This document shows, piece after piece, positions 15,091-52,437 of a stretch of DNA of 64,000 nt (its first letter is position 1; each line of letters starts with the position of its first letter). Location of the stretch: positions 124,001 through 188,000 of IMG/VR virus record IMGVR_UViG_3300050821_009835; one strand, 5' to 3'. The position numbers were made by a program, and so were the translations under genes. Under the pieces are notes generated by a model that saw nothing but the letters and a program-made list of their open reading frames with translations, ran no database searches and was not told the origin of the DNA.

Positions 15091-15179
15091 TGGTACCGGG
15101 TAGGAGAGTCGAACTCCTAAAGAGCTTGCGCTCCACTAGGGCTTGAGCCTAGCGCGTTTTCCATTTCCGCCAACCCGGC
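15091..15179 (-). tRNA. tRNA-Leu(CAA)
   Basis: Class II cloverleaf; loop CTCAAGC; CCA. Confidence 0.88.
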
Positions 15180-16066: not shown

Positions 16067-16146
16067 TGGTGCGCAAGGTGGGCTTCGAACCCACAAATCC
16101 GCTGATTCTGAATCAACGAGGTATTCCAAATTCCCGTCACTTGCGC
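16067..16146 (-). tRNA. tRNA-Leu(CAG) lacking the long variable arm
   Basis: Loop TTCAGAA; Leu-like D loop; variable region only ~6 nt; CCA. Confidence 0.8.
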
Positions 16147-42024: not shown

Positions 42025-42735
42025 TCAATCTGTTCTTGCGGGCCATTGAACCCTATGGTGTTTCTTTTCTAACAGCTCGGGAAAATCTTTGTCGGCGTCT
42101 GTATCCACGCTAATGTTACCCTGGGGTTTCGGGGTTTTGTTCCCATCCATGCCTGGGCCGCCTGTATCCCATTGAGCCTTTTGATCTGCATTCGTACCAA
42201 CCCCCTCCTGAATTTCCCCACTTTGATCGTATCCATAACCTGTTTTTACGAGAAACACAGCCCTTTTTCGCTTACCTTCCATTGTCAAAGCTTCCAACAT
42301 GCTGTGAAGTTTGGACAAAGCATAAGACTGATAGAAGGATGCTGTGGTGAAATCACCAGCCTTGGCATACAACTCGGCTACCTGGGCATCGTGACCAGCT
42401 CGTTCGGTTGTTTTGTACAAATCAATGCGGCCCGAACGTTGGGCGAAGATGTCTCTCAATCCCATAAGCAACTCTTCTAGTTTCGGTTCAGTTCGTTCGT
42501 ACAGGATCTTCTGTTGTTCTGATGTGCTAAATGGAAGAGAATTCCAGAGGCCAGAAACATTATTATAAGTATCACGGAGATAATTTACGTCCTGAGGCCA
42601 AGTGGCTCCTGATTGCAGAAGTTCGTTGGTGAATTGAGGCTTGACCTTGAGAGAAGGAAACGAGGCACCCGCGAGTTTGGGGATGGAAGGCCGTCTCCGC
42701 GCTGCTTCTTGCAATGTCTCTAATGGGATTGGCAT
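42025..42735 (-). CDS. Hypothetical protein
   Basis: Likely start MPIPLE. Confidence 0.5.
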   Translation of the reverse strand: MPIPLETLQEAARRRPSIPKLAGASFPSLKVKPQFTNELLQSGATWPQDVNYLRDTYNNVSGLWNSLPFSTSEQQKILYERTEPKLEELLMGLRDIFAQRSGRIDLYKTTERAGHDAQVAELYAKAGDFTTASFYQSYALSKLHSMLEALTMEGKRKRAVFLVKTGYGYDQSGEIQEGVGTNADQKAQWDTGGPGMDGNKTPKPQGNISVDTDADKDFPELLEKKHHRVQWPARTD

Positions 42736-42923
42736 GAAACCCTCTACTAAACTTCGTAAATTGGGTTTCCACGCTACCAAAACCACTTACATGAAGACAT
42801 TTCTTCAGAGGTGCCTATAGAAGGGCGCTAGAGTTGCATTTCAAGTTCGGACTCTTGTCCGAACAAGGTCCATATGAGACGACTATCGCGGTAGTCGTTC
42901 CATGAGACTCAGAAAGCCAGGAT

Positions 42924-43793: not shown

Positions 43794-44416
43794 GGTTTAT
43801 TTACGGGACGATAGGCTTCATCCACAGCCGCTGCGTTGTAGAAAGCGGTATCCCCATATTGCCGCTTACCATATCCTCCATGGATGTGGCCAAATACATG
43901 AATTTTCGGTTTAGTGCGTTCTACCGCTGTTATCAATTCTGCACAACCCACATGCTCAGACCCAAGATGAGCAGCGGCTTGGTCCAAGATTCCCATAGGA
44001 GGGCCATGAGTAACCAATATATCGAGGCCGGAAGGTATCAAATCCCAGTATTTATGGAGCTGGCCTCGAGTGACGTTGAATGCCCAAGAATAGAACCATG
44101 GTTGCCACGGACTCCCATAGAATTTCAAGCCCATGATTTCAATCCCGCTATCTTCTAAATAAACGATGTTCGGATAATCGGCCTTGAGCAGTTCGATTGC
44201 CTGTTTCTTCTGCCTTTCAAAAAGCCAATCATGATTACCCGCAATAACTATCTTATGAGAATGAGGAAGAGATTGAAGCCATTTACTAACCATGGTAACT
44301 TCTGATACGCGCCCACTCAGGGTAAGATCACCCGAATGGACAAGAATATCCCCATCTGGAACCTATACTTTATCATGAAAATTATGGGTATCAGAAATTA
44401 AGATTAAACGAGGCAT
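43775..44416 (-). CDS. Metallophosphoesterase (239FB/MPPED-like) with an in-frame TAG at 44363-44365
   Basis: MPRLILISDTHN..KV*VPDGDILVHSGD..GNHD..THGPP..FGHIH, all in one frame. Confidence 0.8.
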
Positions 44417-44474
44417 TACTCTTGTATACTTCAAAGGGAGAGAACTTCCTGATTTCTGTTAATGGAGGATTCTT

Positions 44475-45134
44475 ATGTTTATTGATTCGAATATCCAATC
44501 CGCCCCCGGCTGGGGATCTCACGTACAATCTGACGGCTCAGATGTGGGTGGCTGGGATCCAGCAGTATACACCATTGATCAAACTTTTCCGCCCAGCTGC
44601 CGATTTTTTCTTCAAGGTACAAAAAAGCAGGGGTCACTCCCCACAGTAGACTGGTACATTGCGCGCCCAGTACAGGCCAATACCGGCAATCTACAATTAA
44701 ACTTCAGTCTAACGCCAAATACAAATTTGCTTAACAACTATCTGTTCGAAACTGATTGTAAGTTATCGATAGACGAATACACCTACAATTTTTCGTTGCA
44801 GGTGCTTGTGGGAAGTTGGAAATTAGAGATTTCCAATCAAAAAGGCGATTGGGTAGATACTGGATTTACAGTCCCACCTTTCGTTCCTGGTGTTGCAACG
44901 CAGTACGAATTGGTCTACCGTTTTAATACAACAACCAAACTCTATTCTATTCTAACAGCTTCCATTGGTGGACAAGCATTTGAAATCCCTTCTTCATTGG
45001 GAAATCTAACCGCCATCAAAACTGGATGGACTGACACCTTGATTCAGATGCAACGTTCCTTAACGGAAGAAGCAGGGGACGCTAATCAAAGCGCAAGCGA
45101 CCAACTAGATGCTTGCGAATTGATTTGGAGTTGA
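44475..45134 (+). CDS. Hypothetical beta-sandwich (lectin-like) protein on the opposite strand
   Basis: 219 aa, GGAGG RBS, aromatic/beta-rich. Confidence 0.55.
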   Translation: MFIDSNIQSAPGWGSHVQSDGSDVGGWDPAVYTIDQTFPPSCRFFLQGTKKQGSLPTVDWYIARPVQANTGNLQLNFSLTPNTNLLNNYLFETDCKLSIDEYTYNFSLQVLVGSWKLEISNQKGDWVDTGFTVPPFVPGVATQYELVYRFNTTTKLYSILTASIGGQAFEIPSSLGNLTAIKTGWTDTLIQMQRSLTEEAGDANQSASDQLDACELIWS

Positions 45135-45141
45135 CCGAATT

Positions 45142-45215
45142 TGGCGGCTATACCGGGGCTCGAACCCGGTTCTGCTGATTGAGAATCAACAATCCTACCC
45201 ATAGACGATATAGCC
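45142..45215 (-). tRNA. tRNA-Glu(CTC)
   Basis: Cloverleaf; loop TTCTCAA; G73; CCA. Confidence 0.85.
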
Positions 45216-45219
45216 GAGA

Positions 45220-45295
45220 TGGTGGCATACAGGGGAGTCGAACCCCTCATCATCTGGGTGAAGGCCAGAGGACCAAACCGATAGTCGGGTATGCC
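45220..45295 (-). tRNA. tRNA-Glu(TTC), C33 variant
   Basis: Loop CCTTCAC; CCA. Confidence 0.75.
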
Positions 45296-45329
45296 AAAAC
45301 TAACTTGTTTGTGAGCTAACAGTACAAAC

Positions 45330-45405
45330 TGGTGGAGACGGCGAGATTCGAACTCGCGGCCTCATCGTTGCGAACGATGCGCTCTCCCAACTGAGCTACA
45401 TCCCC
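45330..45405 (-). tRNA. tRNA-Ala(CGC)
   Basis: G3:U70; loop TTCGCAA; CCA. Confidence 0.92.
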
Positions 45406-45412
45406 CAAATTT

Positions 45413-45486
45413 TGGTGCTCCGTAAGCGAATCGAACGCTTGCTTTCTGCATGTCGAACAGACGCTCTACCACTGAGCTAACAGAGC
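45413..45486 (-). tRNA. tRNA-Val(GAC), C33 variant
   Basis: Loop TCGACAT; CCA. Confidence 0.85.
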
Positions 45487-45488
45487 TT

Positions 45489-45959
45489 TTACTTCGTAAC
45501 CGGGACTACCTGAGAAGGGATCACCACTTCTGTCCCTGGTACAGTCGATCCGCCTGTTTGGGGTGGAGTCGCTGTAGTAATGGTCGTACTCGTTGTCCCC
45601 GTACTGGTGGAGGGTGCTGGACTCGGAGCATCCGGGCTCATTGTCTTCAATAATGCGCCAAATGCTGAACCAAATGCACCTGTATCAAACGTCAAACCAT
45701 TCAGAGCAATCCCGTTATCCGAAGCAATTGTCCCGTTTTGGATCAACTGCACCACCGTGTAGTACATGTGCTCGGCACGATAAAAAAAGAATACAGAAGC
45801 GACTGCTAGAATTATGATGTTCCCGCCACGAGAATTCGTAATCGTAGCAAAATCCTGCCACACTCCTACGGAGGGGAGCTTCCCCTGATACCACATTACC
45901 ATGAAGGAGAGATATACTACAATCACTCCCGCCCACATTTCCCAAGTTATCGTCACCAT
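45489..45959 (-). CDS. Multi-pass membrane protein with Thr/Pro tail (holin-like?)
   Basis: Three hydrophobic segments; GAGG RBS. Confidence 0.55.
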   Translation of the reverse strand: MVTITWEMWAGVIVVYLSFMVMWYQGKLPSVGVWQDFATITNSRGGNIIILAVASVFFFYRAEHMYYTVVQLIQNGTIASDNGIALNGLTFDTGAFGSAFGALLKTMSPDAPSPAPSTSTGTTSTTITTATPPQTGGSTVPGTEVVIPSQVVPVTK

Positions 45960-45993
45960 TTCGCACCTCTACTATCGAGGCTCGAAAGTCAAA

Positions 45994-46800
45994 TCAATCG
46001 TAGAGTCTCCAAAGTTTTTCTACTGGCAACCCAGTTACCGAAGCCACTTCTGAAAACGTGGGCTGCAATTCTTTTTCAAAAAGAAATTGTACTTGAGGAC
46101 ATTGCTGCTGCTTAGCACTCGTTCTTGCAGAAGGCCAGCCCTTGATTTCTACCAAATTTCCATCTACTAAAAAATCCGGGTAGAAATTGTATCGCACTCC
46201 CTCAAACTCGTAAGATAATGGCCGCCAATTTCTTTCTACTTTCTTTCCTAGCTGCAACGAATGAATGAGATAGGCACATTCCCAGGTGGACTGTACAAAC
46301 ATACCATGGTAGTATCCTGATTTACTACGGCCTCCACCTTCCCGTATTCCACCGCAGCGACCTTCAGCCTTTGCTTTGGCTAAACCTTCTTCATTGTGCA
46401 ATTTTCTACACGAAAGACAAACTGTCCAATTCCTAGGTATTTCTTGCCCACAAGCACAACGTTTAGGAGGCTTAGGAGGTAATAAAGAAACCCTATCATG
46501 GTGAGCCTGAGATATCCTTCTGCGAGTTGTTAACAAACACGGTCTTGTATTCGAACAAGACACAGAACAAGTTAACCCCTTACGTCTAGAAAATTGTTTT
46601 GGGGTGCATTCCAACAAAAACTGCTTTCCACAAACAACGCACTGAACCGGGTAAAGAACCTTTCGTTTGTTTTTCTTTGCCACTGCCAAATTCAAGGCTA
46701 CTCTGTCTGGACGTTTGAAGCAATTACGTATGTGCGCTCCCCAACTTCGCCCATCCTTAGGAAATCCTTCCCTACTTAGTCCACAGTACTGACAAGTCAT
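45994..46800 (-). CDS. TnsA-like PD-(D/E)XK homing endonuclease
   Basis: QSTWE, FYPDFLVDGNLVEIKGW; N-terminal zinc modules. Confidence 0.75.
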   Translation of the reverse strand: MTCQYCGLSREGFPKDGRSWGAHIRNCFKRPDRVALNLAVAKKNKRKVLYPVQCVVCGKQFLLECTPKQFSRRKGLTCSVSCSNTRPCLLTTRRRISQAHHDRVSLLPPKPPKRCACGQEIPRNWTVCLSCRKLHNEEGLAKAKAEGRCGGIREGGGRSKSGYYHGMFVQSTWECAYLIHSLQLGKKVERNWRPLSYEFEGVRYNFYPDFLVDGNLVEIKGWPSARTSAKQQQCPQVQFLFEKELQPTFSEVASVTGLPVEKLWRLYD

Positions 46801-46863
46801 TGGTTTACAACCTCTATAATCAACTCAGATAGTTGTAAATCAAGACTCAACAGTCGCTTATTT

Positions 46864-46942
46864 TGGAGCGGAAGATCAGATTTGAACTGACGAAATGCTG
46901 CGTTGGAAGCGCAGTGCCTTAACCAGACTTGGCGACTCCCGC
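46864..46942 (-). tRNA. tRNA-Gly(TCC)
   Basis: Loop CTTCCAA; U73; CCA. Confidence 0.9.
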
Positions 46943-46951
46943 AAAACATTC

Positions 46952-47325
46952 GCGCTGAACCTATAGCCAGGATTTTGTCGTGGACGACCATTCCTCTAGG
47001 CCACCCGTTACCGTGTGGCTCAAGCTCTCTACCCGCTGATTCCCCACTTCTTACGAAGTGAACGGGCCGGATCAGCCCTGCTCAGCCTATTTGAGATTGC
47101 TCCACGTGGAGATTGCCCGTTTCACCCTATGCTATGGCTGCGAGCCCCTCCCGCATTTAATCCCCAGTCGAGGGAACCAAGTCACAGACTCGTCTCTGTT
47201 GCTCTAATCGTCATTACGCCTTTCAGCGTAACGCTAGGGAGTTACCCTACACGCCATCCTGTGGAGTCCTGAACTTCCTCGGTAAGCAATTCCATCCTGC
47301 TTAACGCGATCGTCCAGTTCAACGC
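46952..47325 (-). ncRNA. rnpB: RNase P RNA, A-type-like, lacking P13/P14
   Basis: GAGGAAGTTCAGG (CR-I), ACAGAGAC (CR-II), GGGTGAAAC (CR-III), CTCCACGTGGAGCAA, AGAGGAAT (CR-IV), ACAAAATCCTGGCTA (CR-V); P1 GCGTTGAACT/GGTTCAGCGC. Confidence 0.92.
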
Positions 47326-47363
47326 AAATTTCAAAGATCTAAACCAAAGTTGCCTGAGCAACT

Positions 47364-47600
47364 TTAATTTTGGTGGAGAACACGGGATTCGAACCCGTCT
47401 GTATTCCGCATTGCAAGTGCAGCGGCCACTCCCAGCAGTCCCGATCCCCCTAACCCCCTTAATCGTTCAATCTCATTGGCAGCTTCTTCAAGTAAATCAG
47501 CCAATCTATCAGGCTTCCCTTCTTGCACGCTCTTCCGTGTAGAAATCTGACGTCTTATCTCAGCTCGCTTGCGTAATCTCTCAATGAGATCTTCGTTCAT
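47364..47600 (-). CDS. Conserved-type phage hypothetical protein whose frame runs through a tRNA-Ala
   Basis: ERLRKRAEIRRQI..RKSVQEGKPDR.ADLLEEAA.EIE motif. Confidence 0.55.
   Translation of the reverse strand: MNEDLIERLRKRAEIRRQISTRKSVQEGKPDRLADLLEEAANEIERLRGLGGSGLLGVAAALAMRNTDGFESRVLHQN
47371..47449 (-). tRNA. Atypical tRNA-Ala(TGC)
   Basis: G3:U70; loop CTTGCAA; CCA; weak D arm; G8. Confidence 0.7.
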
Positions 47601-47604
47601 AAAT

Positions 47605-47680
47605 TGGTGGAGCTAGTCGGGTTTGAACCGACGGCCTCTTTCATGCCATGAAAGCGATCTCCCAACTGATCTATAGCCCC
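47605..47680 (-). tRNA. tRNA-Ala(GGC)
   Basis: GGGGCTA 5' end, G3:U70; loop ATGGCAT; CCA. Confidence 0.9.
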
Positions 47681-47683
47681 AAA

Positions 47684-47854
47684 CTCGAGGGGTCTCGGGG
47701 ATTTCACGAAACGTTCCAGCCGTCGCTGTCTATCCCAGACCCTGAAAGCCCTAACGTGCACCTACTGGGACTCTGCTCTGCCGCTGAGCTACACCCCTGT
47801 CGGGATGGTTGGATTCGAACCAACGACCTGAGTCCGATCGATGCACAGGCTTTC
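47684..47854 (-). ncRNA. Circularly permuted tRNA-like (YrlA/Y-RNA-like) RNA, copy 1, with 3' extension
   Basis: Order: long stem, T arm (GTTGG TTCGAAT CCAAC), loop-closed acceptor stem, D arm (GCTC AGCGGCA GAGC), long stem. Confidence 0.75.
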
Positions 47855-47858
47855 GAAA

Positions 47859-47937
47859 TGGAGATGAAGGCAGGATTTGAACCTGCGATTACAGAGGTTG
47901 CAGCTCTGCCCCTTTAGCCAGACTTGGGTACTTCATC
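47859..47937 (-). tRNA. tRNA-Cys(GCA)
   Basis: Loop CTGCAAC; U73; CCA. Confidence 0.9.
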
Positions 47938-48579
47938 ATAAAGTCGTACGAAATCTTGTCCGTACTTGCCAGAAACATGATCCAAAATACCCTGCATCTG
48001 TTCCCACATTAGAAGATGAATCTTCCTGCTTCCAACGGCATCCAGTTTTCTCTACAAGATATCCTTGTCCACTACAAAACCCTTAATCTCTACTAAACTC
48101 CCATCCGCCAACTTGAAATCCGGTGTGTAGAAATGAACCACTTCATTACGGTCTAAGTAACCGAATCTTTCCCGATTTCTTTCAAAAGGAACACCGTGTT
48201 CCAATTGATAAATTACCCAAGCAAGTTCCCAAGAAGAGTCGCACCAAATTCCTTGATATCGGCCTTTAATGCCTCGCCCACCTCCCTGGTTGCCCAATCC
48301 TAATCGCTTCCTAGTATCACCAATCTTTTTCTTAGTTTCTTCGGACGGCGGTCCTGCTTTACTCCCGGTTCTAGCCCTTGCTGCTGCTTCTACTAAAGCC
48401 CGAACCTTTTCGTTTTCTATAGTCAACCCCTTATTCCAAGGTATCGTGCGTTCAGCTGGCTTAAAACTTACTCCTTTGCCATGCATCCTCCAAATGTGAC
48501 TTGTTAAGCCAAATAAGGACATTTCTTTCCGGCAAATAAAACAGCAAACAAAACCACCCTTAGAGCCTGTTGTTGGCAT
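47914..48579 (-). CDS. TnsA-like PD-(D/E)XK homing endonuclease with an in-frame TAG at 48052-48054
   Basis: CDSSWE..YTPDF..LVEIKGF; frame continues 46 codons past the TAG (..YGQDFVRLYDE) to a TAA inside tRNA-Cys. Confidence 0.75.
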
Positions 48580-48613
48580 AACTCCCTCTAAATAAGAGTA
48601 GGAAGTTTAAAAC

Positions 48614-48646
48614 CAGCTCTGTGCCTTACCACTTGGCCAACGGTCC
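48614..48646 (-). pseudogene. Orphan 5' half of a tRNA (Cys-like), truncated at the anticodon
   Basis: GGACCGTTGGCCAAGTGGTAAGGCACAGAGCTG followed directly by the endonuclease leader. Confidence 0.65.
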
Positions 48647-48659
48647 ATCTAAACTTTTT

Positions 48660-48734
48660 TGGCGGTGACGACGAGAGTCGAACTCGCATCCTACTCCGTG
48701 ACAGGGAGGCACTCTACCATTAAGCTACGTCACC
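48660..48734 (-). tRNA. tRNA-Asp(GTC)
   Basis: Loop CTGTCAC; G73; CCA. Confidence 0.9.
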
Positions 48735-48744
48735 GCATAAAACT

Positions 48745-48818
48745 TGGAGCGGGATAGGGTAATCGAAACCCTTTCTCCGGTCTGGCAGACCAGGGCACAC
48801 CCAATGTACCAATCCCGC
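48745..48818 (-). tRNA. tRNA-Gly(GCC)
   Basis: Loop CTGCCAG; U73; CCA. Confidence 0.88.
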
Positions 48819-48874
48819 TTTAAACGATGCGAATCTATACGCTCAAGACGTTCGTCGCGCCTAAATCTAAATTT

Positions 48875-48951
48875 TGGTACAGGGTGAGGGACTCGAACCC
48901 CCGACATTCTCCTTGTAAGGAAGACGCTTCTACCAACTGAGCTAACCCTGT
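48875..48951 (-). tRNA. tRNA-Val(TAC)
   Basis: Loop CTTACAA; CCA. Confidence 0.9.
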
Positions 48952-49177
48952 ACATTCTATCGTAAAATAGAAAAGACGCCATTAACAGGCGTCCTCGTTT
49001 TACGATTCGGATGTCTTGTTTTACTCTCCGAATCCCTCCGAGGACACTTGCCCCTCCGCCGCGACGCAGCATTCAGCTGCAGTACCGCTATCTCGCACGA
49101 AAGTGTTATTGGTCGTCATGTTATAATAATACCTAGGTATTTGGAAAATCGGGTATAACTAGTGAAATAAAAACTAA

Positions 49178-49203
49178 AGGCCCGAATCTTCTTCTTCGGG
49201 CCT
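49178..49203 (-). terminator. Intrinsic terminator
   Basis: AGGCCCGAA/TTCGGGCCT hairpin followed by TTAGTTTTTATTT. Confidence 0.7.
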
Positions 49204-49239
49204 TCTACTGCCGATGCCGTCGATCGTTACAGGACAACA

Positions 49240-49275
49240 TTAAAAGTTGAAAGGAACCATGATGGTTTTTCGCAT
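49240..49275 (-). CDS. 11-aa small ORF (MRKTIMVPFNF)
   Basis: Strong AAGGAGG RBS; sits between the large ncRNA and the terminator. Confidence 0.4.
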   Translation of the reverse strand: MRKTIMVPFNF

Positions 49276-49715
49276 AGTTATTGTCCTCCTTTTCTTAAAT
49301 TGCACAAAATTCGATCCCCAGCGAGGCCTATGGTATCCCCGCTTCTTTAAAGAGAGCCAACACCCTCCTCCGTTATTGTAGTCCTCCGGTGTTGGCCTTG
49401 GGCGGAGATCTCTGCCCCGTCGTCGACCGGGTTGGCTCCCTCCGCCTCAATTCACTCGGGTGCATCCTACTTCCAGCGGCAATTTGGTTCCGTTTTAGAC
49501 CTAAAGACTTCTTAGGAATCCAGTTTCGGCAGCACCCGCGCTTTTGCGTTTACATCGTACGCTGTGGACGTGTACCTGACCCGCTCCGACCCGAACGTGG
49601 CCGAACGATCGTTGGCAAACGGCGGCTAACGCTTCCCACAGCTAAACTTAATCCAGGAACGCCCTCCTGCGCTCAACAAGGCAGTTATGCACTATACACC
49701 GTGTTCCCGAACCCT

Positions 49716-49791
49716 TGGTGGAGGATGCAGGGATCGAACCTGCGACCTATTGCTTGCAAAGCAATCGCTCTCCCAACTGAGCTAATCCCCC
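49716..49791 (-). tRNA. tRNA-Ala(TGC)
   Basis: Canonical; G3:U70; loop TTTGCAA; CCA. Confidence 0.93.
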
Positions 49792-49887
49792 GACAGCAGC
49801 GTGTCCGAATACCGCGTTGCTCTGCGTTCACAGACTTCGATTCCGACTCGCACCTGACCTCCGGGTAACTTCCCTCATAGTACTCAG

Positions 49888-49938
49888 AAAGTACAGAAAA
49901 TACAAAAGTACAGAAAATACAAAAGTACAGAAAATACA
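49888..49938. repeat. Three exact tandem copies of the 17-nt unit AAAGTACAGAAAATACA
   Basis: Read directly from the sequence. Confidence 0.9.
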
Positions 49939-50314
49939 TCGGCTACAGTAACCCTGCACGTTGAACTATTGCCAGTTAGACTTCGGGACGTTGCCACCGT
50001 CGCACCTATGATGCTTCGGGTTATGCGGGTCATGACTCCCGTGGCAGTGGGTTTTAGCCCTAACCAACCGTGCACAGTATGCAGCCGAATCTTAAGCCTT
50101 AGAAGAACGCGGCGGGAAACTTCCTAGGCAAGTCCCGCCGCATCTCTATCCGTTTCTCCGCCAGGACTGCGCGAGTACTCGGGCTGCTCGTTGCGCGTAT
50201 ACTCAGCGCGATTACCTCTGGATGACCGCTCTGGTGGTCCTGCGTTGCTCTTCGTTACTAGCTGTTAGGCCTCACGGGTGCTGCCCGCTCTGGTCCTCCT
50301 GCGCTTCATCCAAA

Positions 50315-51513: not shown

Positions 51514-52437
51514 TCAGCTATTGACTTCTGCCAAGCAACCGTACTTCAACGGCTGTAGAGTCCAATTTTCGATCTTTGCCTTGTTGATCTGGATGTCTTG
51601 CTTCACTGTGCTTAATTCAAACTCTAGGCGCGACTGACGATTGGCAATCTCCTGATTGAATTCGTATTGATTGGCTTCTTTGGTAAAGGTCTTGGTGTAG
51701 CCCACGCGCTTGCCGTTCTCCCACTTTTGGCACTGTACGTCCACGCTGACTAACGACGGTAGCGTCTTAAGAGCCGCAACAATTCCTTTGCGATGTGATT
51801 CAAGTACAGGAGCAAAGGCGATGTTAGCCTCGTTAGAAAGTTCGTACGGCTTATATTCGACTCCGAAACATTTTCCCACACGATATCCAGCATGATTATA
51901 ATCGGACATCTGATAACCATGCATCACCATTCTAGTGGCGACATCCAACTTCTGGCGGCGAGCGCAAATCGCGCAGATGCCTGTGTTAAAGTTTTCAGCA
52001 ATCAAGTCCGCTTCTGACTTCTCAACTGGGCGGCGACCCTTCACAACAAAGGGCTTTATAGCTTTGATCAGTTTGCCAATCTCGACCACTTCCCGCAAGA
52101 ATTCCATGTATTCGAGGATGAGAGGGTTGCCAAAGCCGTGCTGTTTCTCTAGATTGCGGAGAACTTTGGGGGCGCTAGTGGTATTCATGTAACAAGAGAC
52201 ATCATAACGCGGATCATTCGAATCCCAAGTAACGGCAGACGATCGTTTCTGGACGTAGAAAGGCTCTGCGTAAGAGTTGGTAGCGTCATCTATGCTTCTG
52301 CTGATGACGTATTTTGCATCCTCAACTTGAACGTTCCAGATCTTTTGTGCAGCGAGGCCTGCTTCGAGGACAGCAATCTGCTCTTGAAATCGAGGAGCTT
52401 TGTTTCCAAGAGCCGCGAAGATCTTGGGTGTGTTCAT
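51514..52437 (-). CDS. Hypothetical protein
   Basis: 307 aa; GICAIC..HGYQ..G.CFG motif; TTTACC-N17-TAGAAT promoter just upstream of the ATG. Confidence 0.6.
   Translation of the reverse strand: MNTPKIFAALGNKAPRFQEQIAVLEAGLAAQKIWNVQVEDAKYVISRSIDDATNSYAEPFYVQKRSSAVTWDSNDPRYDVSCYMNTTSAPKVLRNLEKQHGFGNPLILEYMEFLREVVEIGKLIKAIKPFVVKGRRPVEKSEADLIAENFNTGICAICARRQKLDVATRMVMHGYQMSDYNHAGYRVGKCFGVEYKPYELSNEANIAFAPVLESHRKGIVAALKTLPSLVSVDVQCQKWENGKRVGYTKTFTKEANQYEFNQEIANRQSRLEFELSTVKQDIQINKAKIENWTLQPLKYGCLAEVNS

Follow-up and report, generated by a model that had tools for sequence, protein, structure and literature searches.

Can a phage carry its own copy of the ribozyme that matures tRNA 5' ends, and if so, is the P13/P14-less architecture of that RNA an invention of the phage? 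These questions are raised by a locus in a 64,000-nucleotide stretch of DNA (hereafter the window; positions 124,001 to 188,000 of the IMG/VR virus record IMGVR_UViG_3300050821_009835). A preliminary description based on sequence alone had recognized an RNase P RNA at 46952-47325, inside a tRNA cluster, with all five conserved regions, a long P12, an extended P16/P17, a GTAA-looped P18, and no P13/P14. It was proposed there that the phage carries a streamlined tRNA-maturation ribozyme, perhaps suited to atypical tRNAs or to permuted/embedded RNAs, which uses the host's RnpA protein. As described below, what had been observed in the sequence is confirmed, whereas its interpretation is only partly supported: the phage does carry an expressed RNase P RNA and the use of host RnpA is consistent with the data but inferred, while the reading of the P13/P14 loss as phage streamlining or adaptation is not supported.

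Identity and structure of the RNA

A scan of the whole window against Rfam 15 returned a single RNase P hit, RNaseP_bact_a (RF00010), on the minus strand from 47325 to 46948. The score of 170.3 bits is well above the gathering score of 100 (E 3.3e-53), and the match covers model positions 1-367 of 367. The span of 46952-47325 given previously corresponds exactly to the two outer ends of helix P1. In the alignment, GGGUGAAA is joined directly to CGGGCAAUCUCC, and the 43 model positions of P13/P14 are replaced by 0 nt, so that of the S-domain helices P7-P12 are present and P13/P14 are absent. All conserved regions align. The features are as follows, where the RNA position equals 47326 minus the window coordinate:

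46948-47325 (-), RNase P RNA gene, bacterial type A, 378 nt
47315-47325 (-), 5' strand of P1 (RNA 1-11), pairing with 46952-46963 (RNA 363-374), with compensatory changes across the phage clade described below
47267-47280 (-), CR-I, GAGGAAGUUCAGGA, in which the 5' strand of P4 is RNA 51-59 with the bulged U54 at 47272
47235-47249 (-), P8 hairpin (RNA 77-91), 5 of whose 6 pairs covary
47210-47234 (-), P9, extended by a 10-nt insertion (RNA 92-116)
47126-47188 (-), expanded P12 (RNA 138-200, about 63 nt), where the closest relatives have only a 14-nt mini-hairpin
47113-47127 (-), junction GGGUGAAA|CGGGCAA, where P13/P14 would be, with the break between 47120 and 47119
47035-47086 (-), P16/P17 region (RNA 240-291) with a 19-nt insertion and an extra GUAA-capped hairpin at 47046-47061, which is shared only with two clade members (L104 and L058, see below)
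47030-47034 (-), J16/15 GGGUA, holding the GGU motif that pairs with the tRNA 3'-CCA in type-A RNase P
47000-47019 (-), P18 with its GUAA tetraloop at 47008-47011 and covarying pairs
46963-46978 (-), CR-V, ACAAAAUCCUGGCUAU, in which the 3' strand of P4 is RNA 354-361 (46965-46972)
47371-47449 (-), upstream tRNA-Ala(UGC), 45 nt before the 5' end of the RNase P RNA
46864-46942 (-), downstream tRNA-Gly(UCC), whose 5' end lies 9 nt after the end of P1 and 5 nt after the end of the Rfam match
45994-46800 (-), 268-aa ORF downstream of tRNA-Gly with a weak endonuclease-like match (PHROG 29037, E 9.5e-4), probably part of the same transcript

The catalytic core is conserved. Of 95 alignment columns that are at least 97% invariant in 71 bacterial RNase P RNAs, this RNA differs at three, two of which (U53 at 47273 and G359 at 46967) turn the otherwise invariant G-C pair beside the bulged U of P4 into U.G. 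This pair is G-C in all 71 bacterial RNAs sampled, U.G in 7 of the 13 members of the phage clade, and also changed in a few RNAs of other viral clades; the change might lower or alter catalysis. Overall, 4 of the 8 P4 pairs differ from the bacterial consensus, all of them compensated, and the geometry of 3 bp, a bulged U, and 5 bp is kept. The role of the GGU motif is established for E. coli M1 RNA.

Genomic context

The RNA lies in a same-strand tRNA array; the window holds 24 minus-strand tRNA genes and the whole record 29. Of the 29 phage tRNAs, 28 are ordinary ARAGORN calls with an encoded CCA. Four tRNAs called by ARAGORN (Ala-UGC at 47371-47449, Glu-UUC at 45220-45295, Leu-CAG at 16067-16146, and Leu-CAA at 15091-15179, all on the minus strand) are not reported by Rfam at the gathering score, and several tRNAs are 79 nt long with the anticodon at position 36-37. 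ORFs interspersed among the tRNA genes (45994-46800 and 48052-48579, both on the minus strand) have weak endonuclease matches (PHROG 29037, PHROG 945, and Pfam Phage_endo_I) and may be homing-endonuclease-like insertions in the array. A promoter and terminator scan around the gene gave chance-level counts and no convincing promoter of its own.

The record is a 264,912-bp virus contig rated 78% complete by CheckV. PHROG searches identified structural genes (portal, tail sheath, baseplate wedge, tail protein, and a virion structural protein) as well as replication and nucleotide genes (DNA polymerase, helicases, a UvsX-like recombinase, and a ribonucleotide reductase), which characterizes it as a tailed-phage genome. 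The Pfam families Terminase_6N, Phage_sheath_1, and Gp23 gave no hit in the record (for Gp23, the control also matched nowhere), which is usual for diverged huge phages. The record holds one RNase P RNA and no match to RnpA (PF00825). Because the record is incomplete, an rnpA gene could lie in the missing part, although related phages of 463, 456, and 332 kb rated 100% complete also lack one. The conserved flanking ORFs at 42025-42786 and 51514-52437, considered as possible phage-encoded protein cofactors, have no Pfam match and only phage-only hypothetical neighbours in the ESM Atlas.

Expression

The sequence is present in a soil metagenome (X1) and in three soil metatranscriptomes (X2, X3, and X5) from different samples and studies. 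Across 44300-50200, the DNA run is flat at a depth of 24-25, whereas the RNA runs contain contigs with 0 mismatches at 46319-47272 (X2, depth 570), 47000-47310 (X3, depth 141), and 46952-47317 (X5, depth 14.8), the rest of the stretch being at 0-11. The RNA is thus found at 10-50 times the depth of its flanks, a local excess that DNA carry-over cannot produce. The X5 contig matches the predicted RNA almost end to end. The X2 contig is continuous across the RNase P RNA, tRNA-Gly, and 480 nt of the next phage ORF, which fits one polycistronic transcript. It should be noted that the depth of these Logan contigs is a mean over each contig and carries no strand, so that the exact transcript ends and the orientation are not shown. 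Other abundant RNA contigs in the same three runs (depth 43-258) match the conserved P13/P14-less junction (47109-47127) and the J11/12 flank (47187-47213) exactly but carry a different, shorter P12 (joints at 47125-47188). Other P13/P14-less RNase P RNAs, from phages or Burkholderiales, are therefore abundant in the same soils.

A family of RNase P RNAs in related phages

IMG/VR was scanned with two motifs, a degenerate CR-I motif and the P13/P14-less junction GTGAAACGNNCAAYCTC, and the loci were screened with nhmmer and Rfam. A search for the exact 23-nt CR-I sequence of this RNA found no match, although the record itself may be masked in that collection. Together with this record, the scans give at least 34 viral contigs in which an RNase P RNA lies inside a same-strand tRNA array (retrieved loci are labelled L plus a number). 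Of these, 31 lack P13/P14; all 30 besides this record have a same-strand tRNA within 1 kb, and 26 have three or more. The remaining three retain P13/P14, namely L019:8153-8517 (-), L026:536-887 (+), and L004:2968-3382 (-), on contigs of 363, 190, and 7 kb, respectively. They group apart from the clade of the window, which suggests independent acquisitions. Nine further P13/P14-containing hits sit on small contigs with no same-strand tRNA and look like bacterial fragments.

An alignment of 114 near-full RNAs (MAFFT E-INS-i) was trimmed to 306 columns for the trees. In both FastTree and IQ-TREE, this RNA falls in an all-viral clade of 13 (UFBoot 96), whose other members are L081 (76% identity to this RNA), L047 and L070 (72%), L008 (71%, on a 463-kb contig), L071 (332 kb), L104 (224 kb), L058, L052 (456 kb), L112, L015, L074, and L107. 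Eight further members were confirmed by Rfam at 139-189 bits. In 8 of the 13, including this RNA, tRNA-Gly(UCC) follows within 3-7 nt and tRNA-Cys or tRNA-Ala precedes. The loci also share flanking proteins with this phage, namely the ribonucleotide reductase at 69-71% identity in three loci and ORFs of 307 and 236 aa at 32-67% (30-71% over the flanking proteins as a whole). These observations show that the carriers are related phages that inherited the gene vertically. The nodes that would link the viral clade to a bacterial donor are weak (UFBoot 62), so that no donor is claimed.

The fold is under selection. RNAalifold on 12 clade RNAs predicts 67 pairs, 40 of which have double compensatory changes, falling in P1, P4, P5/P7, P8, P15, P16, and P18; 5 of the 8 pairs of P4 covary (alignment columns 486-493 with 84-92). 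Of the pair cells, 94% are canonical, against 31-42% when the 3' partners are slid by 1-3 columns and at most 79% in 300 column shuffles. With slid partners, only 8-16 pairs show double changes (not counted for the shuffles). CGGGU in J16/15 is invariant in 12 of 12 clade members.

Absence of P13/P14

All 13 members of the phage clade lack P13/P14, so that the loss is old. In the alignment, 102 of the 114 RNAs have 2-3 nt at the junction and 12 have 44-46 nt. The junction motif also hit more than 120 bacterial contigs, about 80 of which are true RNase P RNAs. Most belong to Burkholderiales (Polaromonas, Hydrogenophaga, Variovorax, Acidovorax, Curvibacter, Roseateles, Rubrivivax, Aquabacterium, Limnohabitans, Sutterella, and Usitatibacter). 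A few come from bacteria far from this order, namely Omnitrophota (L127, L183, and L185), Alphaproteobacteria (L168, L173, L182, and L191), a Muribaculaceae genome (L234, record OZ246409.1, 717 kb), and a Planctomycetia genome (L235), which suggests repeated loss or transfer. In five Burkholderiales genomes (Diaphorobacter, Hylemonella, Curvibacter, Variovorax, and Simplicispira), the P13/P14-less RNA is the only RF00010 match, at 181-210 bits. A type-A RNA without these arms therefore supports cellular life, and P13/P14 is not a defining feature of the type in practice. Lui et al. (2021) state that missing P13, P14, and P18 is not uncommon in bacteria (PMC8172020).

The preliminary description had named a P13/P14-less norm in the host lineage as the finding that would speak against its reading. 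Although the lineages compared here are those of the phage clade and of the bacteria hit by the motif rather than that of an identified host, the spirit of this condition, that such RNAs are a lineage norm and not a special deletion, is fulfilled. Moreover, at 378 nt, the RNA is not streamlined but as long as typical type-A RNAs, because P9, P12, and P16/P17 are expanded. Real reduction does occur in other phage clades. L013:5399-5667 (-) (269 nt) and L028:2590-2867 (-) (278 nt) lack P12, P13, and P14 (80 model positions replaced by 12 nt) as well as P18, yet still score 136-143 bits and sit inside arrays of 20-27 tRNAs. L095:9823-10153 (+) and L038:1605-1878 (-) lack P13/P14 and P18. Loss of P12 has been called highly unusual (PMC8172020).

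Proposed function and alternative explanations

The best explanation, which we hold with high confidence, is that this is a functional, phage-encoded bacterial type-A RNase P RNA acting on tRNA precursors. In this view, it is transcribed as part of the polycistronic tRNA array of the phage, excised from the array transcript, and accumulates as a stable RNA. It most likely binds the host's RnpA to form a holoenzyme that removes the 5' leaders of the phage's own tRNA precursors, which would secure or increase tRNA-maturation capacity when the phage floods the cell with precursors or when host RNA synthesis is shut down. Its 3' end is probably released when RNase P cleaves at the 5' end of the adjoining tRNA-Gly(UCC). 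The analysis itself establishes the identity of the RNA, the conservation of its fold, its expression, the phage context, and the clade with its synteny, whereas catalysis, the RnpA partner, the substrates, and the 3'-end mechanism are inferred, and less confidence is placed in the specific partner and the 3'-end mechanism than in the general function. Compatibility with the host's RnpA is assumed; bacterial RnpA proteins are interchangeable between species (PMC4919922).

Of the alternatives, a phage-specific streamlining that adapts the ribozyme to unusual phage tRNAs survives best but remains unlikely. In the CR-I scan, which did not depend on P13/P14 status, at least 6 of the 9 RNase P RNAs found inside viral tRNA arrays lack P13/P14, and the L013 and L028 RNAs are truly reduced. 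On the other hand, the length of this RNA, the occurrence of the same junction throughout the clade and as the chromosomal norm in many Burkholderiales, and the ordinary, CCA-encoding phage tRNAs speak against it.

It is similarly unlikely that the RNA is functional but mainly serves to sequester or re-target host RnpA during host takeover or to process non-tRNA phage transcripts. In the absence of a phage RnpA, the RNA must compete with host P RNA for the protein, its abundance in the metatranscriptomes is comparable to that of other RNase P RNAs there, and its P4 sequence is unusual. However, the conserved catalytic core, the GGU motif, and the invariable placement inside tRNA arrays point to tRNA substrates, and a mere decoy would not need P4 and P15 to be conserved.

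A decaying relic of a captured host rnpB is very unlikely: the deviations in P4 and a bit score (170) below that of typical bacterial RNAs (200-330) would fit, but the covariation across 12 relatives, the conserved synteny, the high RNA levels, and the 92 of 95 retained invariant columns do not. An assembly chimera or bacterial contamination, although metagenomic contigs can be chimeric and nine hits on small contigs do look bacterial, is dismissed as very improbable by the flat DNA depth in contigs that join the RNA to phage sequence, the X2 RNA contig linking it to tRNA-Gly and a phage ORF, and twelve independent contigs from other samples that share the arrangement and the flanking phage proteins.

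Relation to known RNase P RNAs and phage RNA genes

[quoted passage not shown] The chromosomal rnpB of Burkholderiales (e.g., Diaphorobacter, Variovorax, Hylemonella, Polaromonas, and Hydrogenophaga) has the same junction, GUGAAACGNNCAAYCUC, and gives the best bacterial identities to the phage RNA, at 62-67% over 306 conserved columns. These are, however, GC-rich chromosomal housekeeping genes that do not fall inside the viral clade, and the bacterial sample was chosen by the junction motif and is therefore biased. Archaeal type-A and bacterial type-B RNAs also lack P13/P14 (PMC4919922). Archaeal type A additionally lacks P18, which is present here, while type B has P5.1, P10.1, and P15.1 and lacks P16/P17, which are present and extended here; judged by P18, by P16/P17, and by the best match within the Rfam clan, which is bact_a, the RNA belongs to neither.

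The translation-related RNA genes of large phages, i.e., tRNA arrays and tmRNA, occupy the same genomic niche, whereas RNase P RNA is a trans-acting, multiple-turnover ribozyme. In two viral contigs, a tmRNA gene lies a few hundred nucleotides upstream of the RNase P RNA (L107:11520-11873 (-) and L038:2261-2579 (-)), so that some phages cluster tRNAs, tmRNA, and RNase P RNA together. No paper describing a phage- or virus-encoded RNase P RNA was found in full-text literature searches, which did not cover most subscription journals and thus provide absence of evidence only. The 50,697 GenBank phage records contain no annotated one: blastn of this RNA found no match, and two other phage RNase P RNAs gave only unannotated metagenomic hits. 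Among the latter, the 'Bacteriophage sp.' records MT836823.1:3970-4301 and MT835553.1:23882-24190 from human faeces hold sequences 72-75% identical to L026. The RNA thus belongs to a known family and its helix content is a known natural variant; what seems new is the carrier.

Implications

It is possible, although tentative, that RNase P ribozyme genes are a widespread, so far undescribed class of auxiliary genes in large phages, always embedded in tRNA arrays and maintained for long periods in several independent viral lineages. Those lineages would explore sequence and structure space that cellular RNase P does not, including a U.G pair beside the catalytic P4 bulge and natural forms of about 270 nt lacking P12, P13, P14, and P18, and they might work with host RnpA, with an unknown phage protein, or as RNA alone. 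The phage clades form a natural series of reduced and altered type-A RNAs that can test which S-domain helices and P4 identities are really needed and how freely RnpA pairs with foreign P RNAs. For annotation, RNase P RNA on a contig should no longer be read as proof of cellular origin.

RNase P is regarded as a universal cellular housekeeping ribozyme. The gene described here is an old, vertically inherited feature of a lineage of huge tailed soil phages, and the absence of P13/P14 is inherited within that lineage and is a variant that bacteria also live with. It adds a trans-acting catalytic RNA, its activity being inferred, to the phage translation toolkit of tRNAs, tmRNA, aminoacyl-tRNA synthetases, and ribosomal proteins, and a conserved, expressed phage copy suggests that tRNA 5' maturation can limit, or is contested during, infection by tRNA-rich huge phages.
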